Assembly (NCBI GenBank): GCA_003693705.1
Contig: RBZT01000574.1
Coordinates: 1-60,999 of the forward strand
Direction: 5' to 3'
Source of the DNA: Polymyxa betae A26-41
Lineage: Eukaryota > Protista > Endomyxa: Phytomyxea
DNA: 60,999 nt
Notes under the pieces: generated by a model
Databases searched by the model: none
Seen by the model: the letters and a program-made list of their open reading frames with translations, nothing else
What the model was told of the DNA's origin: nothing
Shown here: positions 15,025 to 19,281 of the stretch, one piece after another
Layout of the letters: each line of letters opens with the position of its first letter
Position numbering within the stretch: position 1 is the first letter of the stretch
Made by a program: the position numbers and the translations under genes

Positions 15025-15888
15025 CTATGATTTCATATGCAGCTGCTGGTAGCAGTTCAACGAGCAGAGCGGCTTTGAGGTTTTCGAGCACGAATACAGC
15101 CTGGGCTTACCGCAACCGCATCGAGCCTTCTTTTCCGGCCTCGACAGCACCGGCTGCAGATTCAAGCTGTACCCATCAGGCAGAGTAACAGTGGCGATAT
15201 CATGCTCGTCATGAATGAAATTTCTGTAGCGGATGACGCCCGGGTGCGGCACCTTGATCTCCTCCAAGCGACGTTCAGCGGCCGACTTTCTTACATCATC
15301 GCCATTCCGCTGTCGCTTTTTGTCGGATTTCGCTTTGCGAACGCTGGTCTTCTTCAGCAGCCTTTCAATCGTCTCCTGTTTCGCTTGCTCTTCGATCTTA
15401 TCAAGCGCCAGCCTTCTTCTTCGTCTCATTTCGCTTTTTCTCAGAGCCGCTTCTTCTTTAGAAATTGGGCCTAAATCTTGCTCTTCTTCATCGTCTTCTT
15501 CGTCCTCATCTTCTTCGTCCTCCTCATCTTCAGCCTCTTGTGCCTGCTTTAAAGATCGTTGGCGACTCGTCAGCCGATCCTCGGATGGTGCAACCTTCTC
15601 GTCTTCCGATGACACATCCTTGGCATGGATTGCCTCTGGCTCTTCCTCAGGCTCTGGTTCCATTTCTTCAACATAATCGATCTCCGGTTCTAATACAGCA
15701 GGCTCTTCAATTATAGGGGGCTCCTCTTTAGGTTTCTTTTTATCCTCCTTTTTCACCTGCTGCAAGCGTCGCACATAGATCTTAATGGGCGGCCCGCGAA
15801 CGACCTGGATCAGCTCATACGGGTCGGTCTTGATTTCGAATTCGGTCGCCGATGATCGGCGAAGCCGAACCCGAATGCCGGTTGACAT
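15025..15888 (-). CDS. INO80B: INO80 complex subunit B / Ies2 (PAPA-1 domain + HIT zinc finger)
   Basis: LTSRQR, EEAALRKSEMRRRRR...ETIERLLKK PAPA-1 signature; C-terminal CGCGKPRLYSCSKTSKPLCSLNCY. Confidence 0.85.
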   Translation of the reverse strand: MSTGIRVRLRRSSATEFEIKTDPYELIQVVRGPPIKIYVRRLQQVKKEDKKKPKEEPPIIEEPAVLEPEIDYVEEMEPEPEEEPEAIHAKDVSSEDEKVAPSEDRLTSRQRSLKQAQEAEDEEDEEDEDEEDDEEEQDLGPISKEEAALRKSEMRRRRRLALDKIEEQAKQETIERLLKKTSVRKAKSDKKRQRNGDDVRKSAAERRLEEIKVPHPGVIRYRNFIHDEHDIATVTLPDGYSLNLQPVLSRPEKKARCGCGKPRLYSCSKTSKPLCSLNCYQQLHMKS

Positions 15889-16182: not shown

Positions 16183-16319
16183 CTGCATTCTGGAAGCGAA
16201 TCTGCATTCCAGAACGCGAATCTACATTCCAGAAAGCTAATCGGCATTCCAGAAGCGAATCTGCATTCCAGAAAGCGAATCGCCATTCCAAAAGCGAATC
16301 TGCATTTTTGAAGGGAATC
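16183..16319. repeat. Tandem minisatellite, 19-20 bp x 7 (CTGCATTCCAGAAGCGAAT)
   Basis: Directly visible head-to-tail units with no spacers; most units contain TTCnnGAA. Confidence 0.9.
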
Positions 16320-16356: not shown

Positions 16357-17846
16357 TTAATTATAGTAGAGCTCGAGACTCATGCCGTCCAAGACCTCGT
16401 AAGCATCCAGGGTGATGTGGTCTTTGAAGACAGTGTACCATTTCTGAAGGCGAATCTTCTCGGGGCGAACGCCGACCTGGACGGCGATCAGTTGCTTGAG
16501 CTGCCCGACCGTATCGGTCTTGAGACATTTGACGCGCGTTTTCGTCCCGAGACGATCGTTCAGCACGACTGCAATGAAAGTCAGAATCAATCTGCTACTA
16601 AACAGCACAGATACAAACCTTCGATGGCGCCGGCAGACGACGTCCCGGCTCCTTGCAAACCTTTTTTCTCAGCAGCGAGAATCTCCATTGCTTGCTCTTC
16701 GAGTTTCGAAACTTTCCGCTTTTCGGGTTGATTTTTCAGCTTCATCTTGAGACGCAAAGCAGGTTTCTTCTCGATCCCAGTTTCAGCCGCGACTGGACCA
16801 GCACTGCAGCAAAAAATCAGTCGAGATCAATAACAGAGCTAACACATTTACCTGTTAGTCTCGGGTTTCTCTTCGTCGATCTTCTTAACATCATCTCCTT
16901 GATCAGCAGTAGTATCAGGTCTGTGCAGAAGGTTTGCCTCAGAAACGGAATGCAAAATAAGCAAAGCGAAAGCTGCCACAAAATCGTTCTAAAATAGAAT
17001 TACAAAAACAAGACTGAGGCCTGCTATGGAAAATAACACGAAAACCAGAAGCCAGATTAATGTCAAAAACCAAAAGCAAAGTTATGCTATTATTAAGACA
17101 TTGGAACCCGAATAGCAGCAAAATAAGGTCGAAAAGCAGATTGGAAGAAGCTCAAACTCGTTCAGTAACAATTAACAGCTTATAGCTAACCGCTGCTGAA
17201 GCGAAGGTGATTGATCCAGCTCTTTGTCCTGGGCGTGCTGGCTCATACCGGAATCGCGCTGTTCGTCACGATGATGCCTCTTCTCGTCGCGCTCTTTATC
17301 GTCATCGCGATCGTCCTTTCTATCGTGACCTCGACTGTCACGACGATCTCGATGGTCTCGATCGCGATGCCGATCGTGATCTGACGAGCGACGATGCGGG
17401 CGATCGTCGTGTCGTCGATCACTACGATTATGACGCCGATCACTATCGTAACGATCTTCATGACCATCGCGTCGTCGGCGATCATAACTGCTCCTACGAC
17501 GATCGTGATGTCGCTTTGGAGACCGAGAGCGATCCCGATCGTGACGTCTTGGAGATCTATCTCTGTCATGGCGTCGTGGCGACCTGTGTTTATCGTGATA
17601 TCGTCTCGAACGGTCTCCATCTCGGTGATGACGAGAACGATGGCGATCGCCTTCGTCGGATTTATCATCATCTCGGCTCTCACTCGGCGAACGCCTTGAC
17701 GCCTTCTTCGTATCGGCAGGATCCTTTCGCTCTCCATCGATCGCTGGCCAGACATTGACAGCTCTGGGTCTCATCTCTCCACTGCCGCTGGAGTTCGCAT
17801 CGTCGTCAGGCTTAACAGCAGCCGCCGACGCCGAAGGTGACGACAT
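16357..17846 (-). CDS. UBL5: Hub1/UBL5 ubiquitin-like domain with long N-terminal RS/RD/RH-rich extension (exons 17846-17191, 16920-16852, 16803-16619, 16568-16357; ~373 aa)
   Basis: C-terminal [17 protein letters not shown]...[30 protein letters not shown] is Hub1; Met1 position is Ala; upstream exons join in frame; exon 1 is [15 protein letters not shown]-rich. Hub1 domain is very secure, joining to exon 1 less so. Confidence 0.75.
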
Positions 17847-18342
17847 GAAATCACCAACAGAATCGATTTACGCATCAAACGACGTTCACGCATCATCTAA
17901 TTTGATGAAGTTGATTTCTCAGCCTTCAGCCCGTATAGAAATGTTGTAAGAAAACGAATTCAAACGCTGATGCTATTTGTAGCACTAAGAAACGACTTTC
18001 TGTCAAGGATAATTGTTGTAAAGTTTTAATCTTTTCGAACGGAATCTTCAGCCTAGGAAAGCGAGTTCAAACGCGCATGCAAAACAGCCTTCCCATGCAA
18101 GAATAGTTTGAGATGTTTTTGTATTTTTCAAGATTCAATCCTCAGCGACTAAAATGCAGATGTCCGAGAGCATGGTTTCGATAAACTATCAGCAGACAGA
18201 ATGCGATTGTTAGCTGAAGAGAGATCCGATCGACAGTTGCGATATGATTCATGTGAAAGTTGAGTCACATCGATCCAGGGTTGACTCGAGCTCAGAGGCA
18301 CCAGATCATAACCTTATTGATCCCGACATCCCCATCGAACCA

Positions 18343-19281
18343 ATGATATTTTTATTTATTGCACTCGTAACCTTACCCATGGCCAGAGCCGTCCTGTCGG
18401 TCAACGACATGATCGCGGCTCACAATTCGGCACGAGCCGAGATCGGCCTGGGCGCCGTCACCTGGATGGCGTCATTAGAAGCCAGCGCTCAAGCGGCGGT
18501 CGCCAACTGCCCTACCACCCATGATCCGAAGGCGAATTCGATCGAGAACTTGTCCTGGGGTTGGCCGACCATGACCACGGCCGAAGCCTTCAAGAACTGG
18601 TACGATGAGAAGCCCGCCTATCTGCCCCAATCGCAATCGTGTGCCGCCGGTCAAGTCTGCGGCCATTACATGAACATTGTCGGGCTAACCTCCATCGTTA
18701 TCACAGCACGTCTGCTGACTTTCCTGCCACAGGTCCAGTACGCCGGCATCGGCTGCGCCGTGAACAACTGTGCGAATCTGTTCGGCCAACCCAAGGTCGA
18801 CACGTACGCCTGTCATTACGCACCGATGTCGTCGGCGTCGACGACAGCACCAACAACGGCGCCAACAACGCCGCCCGTGACAGCGCCAGCGGCAATGCGG
18901 TCAAGTCCAGCGACGGCAACAGCAGCTCCAACGATGGCGGCGGATGCATCACAAAACACAACGAAACCGTCGGCGGCGGTCCCGAGCGTGGCGTCTGACA
19001 TCGTTTTGCCGCTGATGACCGCGATTGCCAACAGCAGCAGCGTATCAGGGCAGGATTGTTCGGGCGGAAACCGAACCGCTTCCGTGATGTTCGCTTTCAA
19101 GAACCGAGTTCCGGCCACACCCGACTTCGCCCAACCCGCCCCGAAATCGCGATGGTCGTCGTTCGACCAAACTAGATCGATGCCGACACCATCAAGCCGA
19201 CATAATCGTCGACCAAGTCGCTATGACCTGCAACCGCCACGGCAGCAACCCTGGGCGAGAACTGCCACCATCGTCGTTTAA
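18343..19281 (+). CDS. Secreted CAP/SCP/PR-1-like protein with Thr/Ala/Pro-rich tail (in-frame intron 18679-18732)
   Basis: Signal peptide MIFLFIALVTLPMARA; AHNSARA, ENLSWG, WYDEK, CGHY, IGCA, ACHYAP. Confidence 0.88.
   Translation: MIFLFIALVTLPMARAVLSVNDMIAAHNSARAEIGLGAVTWMASLEASAQAAVANCPTTHDPKANSIENLSWGWPTMTTAEAFKNWYDEKPAYLPQSQSCAAGQVCGHYMNIVGLTSIVITARLLTFLPQVQYAGIGCAVNNCANLFGQPKVDTYACHYAPMSSASTTAPTTAPTTPPVTAPAAMRSSPATATAAPTMAADASQNTTKPSAAVPSVASDIVLPLMTAIANSSSVSGQDCSGGNRTASVMFAFKNRVPATPDFAQPAPKSRWSSFDQTRSMPTPSSRHNRRPSRYDLQPPRQQPWARTATIVV

Follow-up and report, generated by a model that had tools for sequence, protein, structure and literature searches.

An RS-like arginine-rich region in frame with the Hub1/UBL5 domain in Polymyxa betae and its relatives

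A four-exon gene ending in a Hub1/UBL5 exon

The window analyzed here comprises positions 1 to 60,999 of contig RBZT01000574.1 of Polymyxa betae A26-41 (assembly GCA_003693705.1). On its minus strand, it contains a four-exon gene extending from position 17846 to position 16357, whose exons join in frame to a total of 1122 nt, i.e., 373 codons followed by TAA (Table 1). Read from the N to the C terminus, exon 1 encodes a region rich in R, D, S, and H, the short exons 2 and 3 follow, and exon 4 encodes Hub1/UBL5. The GC content is 0.43 to 0.56 in the exons (0.56 in exon 1) and 0.37 to 0.38 in the introns. All three introns terminate in CAG and carry a CTGAY/CTGAG branch-like motif upstream of the acceptor. 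Neither exon 2 nor the ORF of exon 4 contains an in-frame ATG, and the end of exon 3 (...GAIE) joins the start of exon 4 (VVLNDRLG) in such a way that Ala occupies Hub1 position 1. Exon 3 encodes two basic patches, an amphipathic helix, and a Gly/Ser/Ala stretch before the final AIE; the basic patches are a possible bipartite nuclear localization signal. Exon 2 loosely resembles an EKVENPADKS stretch in one of the relatives described below (L004). In the analysis that follows, single exons or orthologs were used as queries in sequence searches, and the fold was assessed on the predicted model of an ortholog (P0015).

Table 1. Exons, introns, and diagnostic codons of the gene, with positions in the window.
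Feature	Position	Strand	Description
Exon 1	17846-17191	-	218 codons plus 2 nt; start at the first ATG of the ORF; Arg-rich mixed-charge, RS-like; collinear low-complexity match to the N termini of L004 and P0167; predicted disordered
Intron 1	17190-16921	-	270 nt, GTTAGC...CACAG, GC 0.37; required for the frame
Exon 2	16920-16852	-	69 nt; short acidic/lysine spacer without in-frame ATG
Intron 2	16851-16804	-	48 nt, GTAAAT...TGCAG
Exon 3	16803-16619	-	Conserved linker and AIE (Hub1 residues 1 to 3)
Intron 3	16618-16569	-	50 nt, GTTTGT...TGCAG; phase 1, after IE
Exon 4	16568-16357	-	Hub1/UBL5 ubiquitin-like domain, V4 to N73, then TAA; ends YYN-TAA
Asp22 codon	16515-16513	-	GAT; HIND salt-bridge residue; D in 154/154 Hub1 representatives
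Leu63 codon	16392-16390	-	TTG; aligned to His63 of UBL5

Exon 4 matched human UBL5 (6AHD and 4PYU) with an E value of about 2e-25 and yeast Hub1 (3PLU) with an E value of 5e-20. Its Pfam match was to the general ubiquitin family only, and its named homologs were labeled "ubiquitin-like protein 5." In the AlphaFold model of P0015, the Hub1 domain is predicted with pLDDT above 90, and its superposition on 4PYU, 3PLU, and 3PLV yielded TM scores of 0.91 to 0.98 (normalized by target) at an rmsd of 0.6 to 0.8 Å. The protein ends with LELYYN-stop, a di-tyrosine being kept in place of di-glycine. By sequence and fold, exon 4 is a genuine Hub1/UBL5 ortholog. Several of these features had been read from the letters of the locus in a first-pass annotation, and they hold. 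The annotated four-exon in-frame structure agrees with the intron phases, the 1122-nt total, and the GC contrast between exons and introns; Ala stands in place of Met1 at the exon 3/exon 4 junction; and the D22 codon and the terminal tyrosines are present where they were placed.

The annotation had also proposed a search for a second, canonical Hub1. When two different Hub1 queries were run against the 27.1-Mb assembly (1001 contigs, 27,085,814 bases), this locus was the only Hub1 found, other weak matches being ubiquitin repeats. The published draft assembly of Polymyxa betae has 45.1% GC and recovers 91.3% of CEGMA core genes. A second Hub1 may lie in unassembled sequence or be split into tiny exons.

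The region encoded by exon 1 consists of 24% R, 20% D, 13% S, and 9% H. It contains 16 RS/SR dipeptides, 30 RD/DR, and 16 RH/HR (46 RD/DR and RH/HR taken together). Arg and Ser account for 37% of residues across the exon and for 46% in its core. The corresponding region of Plasmodiophora brassicae, with 53% R+S and 38% R, is closer to the definition of an RS domain. A strict SR protein has one or two N-terminal RRMs together with an RS domain that spans 50 residues or more, exceeds 40% R+S, and contains RS/SR repeats in succession. When exons 1 to 3 were compared with Pfam, no family was matched at E values up to 1, and no RRM was found. The "SR-like" label given to this protein initially is therefore overstated, given the lack of an RRM and the excess of RD and RH dipeptides over RS. 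On sequence grounds, the tail can be called RS-like, yet the protein does not qualify as an SR protein.

Conservation of the fusion and divergence of residue 63

To find relatives of the gene, the Hub1 exon was scanned against 1.84 billion representatives. The two closest relatives carry N-terminal extensions homologous to exon 3. One of them, a 1078-bp contig (L004), contains a single uninterrupted 310-codon ORF that runs from an RS-like region through the linker into Hub1 and that represents either cDNA or intron-free genomic DNA. The other is a genomic locus of P. brassicae (L003), where the reading frame of an RS-rich region continues into the linker and IE is followed by the only intron. 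The site and phase of this sole intron are identical to those of intron 3 in Polymyxa betae. The spliced product (P0167, 257 aa) is available in NCBI under three accessions, including CEO94584.1 and SPQ96928.1, where it is labeled "Ubiquitin-like domain-containing protein," and its tail, linker, and Hub1 domain follow one another as in Polymyxa betae. Compared to the Polymyxa betae protein, it has the same RS-rich N terminus, linker motifs, Hub1 domain, and intron site, but differs in having a shorter tail of stronger RS character, in encoding tail and linker in one exon, and in keeping both Met1 and His63.

When both orthologs were compared with the window by tblastn, exons 1, 3, and 4 were matched in the same order. 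In neither relative does a stop codon separate the RS region from the linker. The linker has 18 columns that are invariant in all three plasmodiophorid sequences; these include an L-K-x-K-L-K patch, a helix with the pattern K-x-S-x-L-E...A..I-L-A, and the terminal I-E. The two in-frame Met codons of exon 3 correspond to Phe/Ile and Arg/Leu in the relatives and thus are not conserved starts. Of the three species, only P. brassicae keeps Met at Hub1 position 1; the other two have lost it, with Ala in Polymyxa betae and Thr in L004. The fusion noted initially, together with the suggestion that the same part order be sought in related taxa, thus finds its counterpart in P0167 and L004, and the comparison provides strong support for the view that the fusion is not an artefact of the gene model. 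The alignments further indicate that the architecture is inherited and common to Polymyxa betae, P. brassicae, and a third plasmodiophorid-like relative.

The alignment of exon 4 pairs Leu, encoded by TTG, with His63 of UBL5, as the annotation had reported. TTG and CAY disagree at each of their three positions, so that Leu63 cannot be the result of one miscalled base. Of 154 parsed Hub1 representatives, 136 have H at position 63; the other 18 have K (8), A (3), R, S, and G (2 each), and I (1), and none of the 154 has Leu. His63 is kept in both fused relatives and in the RS-bearing proteins P0107, P0168, and P0079 considered below, which argues that Leu63 is a later change in the Polymyxa betae lineage. 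Leu63 is therefore real, unusual, and lineage-specific, and it arose independently of the fusion. In the literature, D22 of Hub1 binds the HIND of Snu66/SART1 via a salt bridge to the HIND arginine, and hub1-H63L is a yeast mutant defective in Prp5 binding; both statements in the annotation agree with published work. Leu63 probably weakens or re-targets the Prp5-linked surface. The further idea that the RS domain has taken the place of the H63 surface found no support in the comparison, given that His63 is retained in the fused relatives and in P0107, P0168, and P0079.

Extended forms of Hub1 are also found outside these three sequences. In Streblomastix strix, an oxymonad, an RS-rich N-terminal region is in frame with Hub1 (KAA6388708.1, P0107, 246 aa). 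RS-rich N-terminal extensions of Hub1 were also present in the protist proteins P0168 (L023, 4295-4813), P0079 (L021, 3766-4212), and P0072. P0079 is encoded on a gene-dense genomic contig of 31.9 kb, and the nearest named match of RPL27e, encoded next to it, is from P. brassicae (66% identity); this similarity is suggestive of a rhizarian origin of the contig. Searches of the literature for RS-Hub1 fusions or for N-terminal extensions of Hub1 returned no description. Two other proteins, P0169 and P0025, have a Hub1 extension that is not of the RS type and contains a helix (KKPLTFAEAEANAKAKIAA).

Proposed tethering of Hub1 and competing readings

It is likely that the locus is one gene, the sole detectable Hub1 of this organism, encoding an inherited 373-residue RS-like fusion whose tail tethers Hub1, and that Leu63 was acquired later. 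The protein would consist of a ~200-residue disordered Arg-rich region with RS, RD, and RH dipeptides, a short spacer, the conserved linker, and a C-terminal Hub1 domain without a start of its own. The Hub1 domain would still use its D22 surface to act on the spliceosome. To judge by composition alone, the RS-like tail and the basic linker may ensure nuclear import followed by retention at speckles or spliceosomes; arginine-rich mixed-charge domains (e.g., that of U1-70K) and RS domains target nuclear speckles. By analogy with other splicing factors, retention could proceed via RS-RS and RS-RNA contacts. Permanent tethering would then take the place of the recruitment of Hub1 as a free modifier of 73 residues. 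Such self-tethering through the RS-like tail is a plausible reading. It fits two published observations: in human SART1, the RS domain (aa 41-108) is located directly before the HIND, and in yeast two-hybrid experiments, Hub1 with a partner fused to its N terminus retains Snu66 binding.

The putative partners of Hub1 were also inspected. The Snu66/SART1 ortholog of Polymyxa betae is located on another contig (C720, about 152985-155116; N-terminal ORF L008, 1104-1409) and seems to begin immediately ahead of the conserved SART-1 region. No RS-like ORF was found within 1.1 kb upstream of it and no Pfam HIND at its N terminus, which is a weak negative. In Polymyxa betae, Snu66/SART1 thus shows neither an RS domain nor a recognizable N-terminal HIND, and it is Hub1 itself that bears an RS-like tail. 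A six-frame search of the genome with the Pfam HIND profile (PF19252) yielded no candidates; this, too, is a weak negative, the profile having 25 positions, and the absence of HIND in partners rests on a brief inspection of two genes. The second of these encodes a PRP38-domain protein (contig C32, L017, 1507-2490), whose C-terminal tail did not match the Pfam HIND, again a weak negative.

Two side observations were made on these partners. The first residues of the Snu66 ortholog, IISADEVRAPR, faintly recall a HIND. The PRP38 paralog has an unusual architecture for its family: it contains a Tudor-like segment, for which the Pfam TUDOR match (E value of 3.9e-4) fell below the cut-off, and its C terminus forms a short RS-like tail.

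A more far-reaching reading is that the long RS-Hub1 form is a distinct, old lineage comprising Phytomyxea, other rhizarian-like protists, and an oxymonad, in which recruitment moved from the HIND of Snu66 or Prp38 to the tail of Hub1, the plasmodiophorid linker helix occupies the D22 surface of its own protein, and H63L marks the loss of the Prp5 surface. In a quick tree of the Hub1 domain (69 columns), all extended forms fell into one group (12 of 119 rows) with a weak SH-aLRT of 69; the plasmodiophorids and P0072 were grouped at an SH-aLRT of 92. RS-bearing Hub1 may have had either one origin or several. As a whole, this reading seems unlikely to us.

It is also conceivable, if quite unlikely, that the full-length protein is a precursor that is cut within the Gly/Ser/Ala stretch to release a free Hub1 of canonical size, the tail serving expression, import, or regulation. 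It is common for proteins of the ubiquitin family to be synthesized as fusions that undergo later processing. The stretch preceding Hub1 is flexible and poorly conserved (pLDDT of about 51 in the ortholog model), and P. brassicae retains Met at Hub1 position 1. However, known ubiquitin-like processing cuts after and not before the ubiquitin-like domain, no conserved protease site is present, and the loss of Met1 in two of three species implies that an independently started free Hub1 has not been maintained.

Very unlikely, in our estimate, is the existence of two transcription units, in which exon 1 alone would encode an RS-rich protein and a separate Hub1 mRNA would arise from intron 1 or exon 3 and use an exon 3 Met; in that case, the fusion would exist only as an artefact of the gene model, or else as a minor isoform. 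The exon 1 ORF runs six codons into intron 1 before reaching a stop at 17172, exon 3 contains two in-frame Met codons, and intron 1 is far longer (270 nt) than introns 2 and 3, has a weak donor (GTTAGC), and could hold an internal promoter. Against this, the RS region and the linker form one stop-free frame in both relatives, and the exon 3 Met codons are replaced there by Phe/Ile and Arg/Leu. In addition, exon 2 is in frame, lacks an ATG, and has a loose match in an ortholog, while the GC content of intron 1 (0.37) is intron-like when compared to that of exon 1 (0.56).

The least probable of the readings considered is that the linker helix is HIND-like and docks on the D22 surface of its own protein, so that Hub1 is self-occupied or autoinhibited and the RS-HIND of Snu66 has moved onto Hub1: the order of RS-like region, helix, flexible stretch, and Hub1 does parallel human SART1 RS-HIND bound to UBL5, Met1 of Hub1 sits in the HIND interface, which would bring an N-terminally attached helix close to the site, the helix is conserved in three species, and Snu66 here has neither an RS region nor a recognizable HIND at its N terminus, but no linker matched PF19252, a profile of the linker retrieved no SART1/Snu66 chain, the helix has no conserved Arg for D22 and is predicted with a pLDDT of only 62 to 70, and the RS-Hub1 proteins P0072 and P0079 are without such a helix. 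The individual results are as follows. PF19252 was compared with the linker and with five other N-terminally extended Hub1 proteins, and no match was obtained at E values up to 10. The linker profile produced only a chance match to ribosomal L1 (E value of 0.34) among PDB sequences, and a search of the ESM Atlas with the linker gave no usable match. In the AlphaFold model of P0015, the helix spans residues 28 to 41, and the three orthologs share no invariant Arg in it that could pair with D22. With no profile match, no conserved Arg, and moderate pLDDT, the idea that the helix is a same-protein HIND was rejected as unsupported.

Relation to known systems and surroundings of the gene

We return to the likely reading, that of a single inherited gene in which Hub1 is tethered by its tail, and compare it with known systems. 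The literature describes Hub1/UBL5 as a free-standing protein of 73 residues whose association with splicing factors is noncovalent, the HIND of Snu66 or Prp38 being bound in this way. Human UBL5 is about 65% identical to the Hub1 domain of Polymyxa betae. Yeast Hub1 and human UBL5 (3PLU, 3PLV, 4PYU, and 6AHD) share with it the length, the fold, D22, the di-tyrosine end, and the lack of di-glycine. Two features of the family, i.e., a free-standing protein of ~73 residues with its own Met and His63, are absent here: the domain is preceded by about 300 residues, has Ala for Met1, and carries Leu63.

The closest described arrangement is the noncovalent pair of SART1 (RS-HIND) and UBL5. In both cases, an RS-type region is brought beside Hub1 in the context of the tri-snRNP. 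In the human pair, the RS domain and Hub1 belong to separate proteins joined by the HIND-D22 salt bridge, whereas in Polymyxa betae they are parts of one polypeptide, and no HIND is recognizable in the linker or at the N terminus of Snu66. What the Polymyxa betae protein shares with SR and SR-related proteins and with U1-70K-type domains is an extended disordered region that is rich in Arg and contains RS, RD, and RH dipeptides. It differs from SR proteins in that it has no RRM, RS/SR dipeptides are in the minority (16 versus 46), and the folded partner is a ubiquitin-like modifier and not an RNA-binding domain. Splicing factors with a built-in ubiquitin-like domain also exist, namely, SF3A1, where this domain is C-terminal, and Sde2, where it is N-terminal and processing occurs after it. 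As here, a ubiquitin-fold domain is covalently included in a spliceosomal protein; however, the ubiquitin-like domains of SF3A1 and Sde2 are not Hub1 orthologs, while in Polymyxa betae a genuine Hub1 ortholog forms the C-terminal domain.

A lineage whose only detectable Hub1 bears a permanent RS-like tail offers a natural experiment on the delivery of Hub1 to the spliceosome. The natural H63L change, exactly the substitution that disables Prp5 binding in yeast, also opens a way to ask whether a tethered Hub1 can do without its second surface. The relevance lies in basic splicing biology and not in the pathogenicity of these organisms, which are obligate parasites of roots and have short introns.

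The surroundings of the gene have some features of their own. A minisatellite with ~20-nt units (TTCTGGAATGCAGATTCGCT-like) occupies positions 16183-16319, beginning about 40 nt past the Hub1 stop codon. It may lie both in the 3′ UTR of the Hub1 gene and upstream of a neighboring gene at 15025-15888 on the minus strand, which encodes a putative acidic protein ending in a Cys-rich, zf-HIT-like motif. On the other side, at 18244-19281 on the plus strand, is a divergently oriented gene, about 400 bp from the Hub1 start, whose product may be PR-1-like and has a Thr/Pro/Ala-rich tail.
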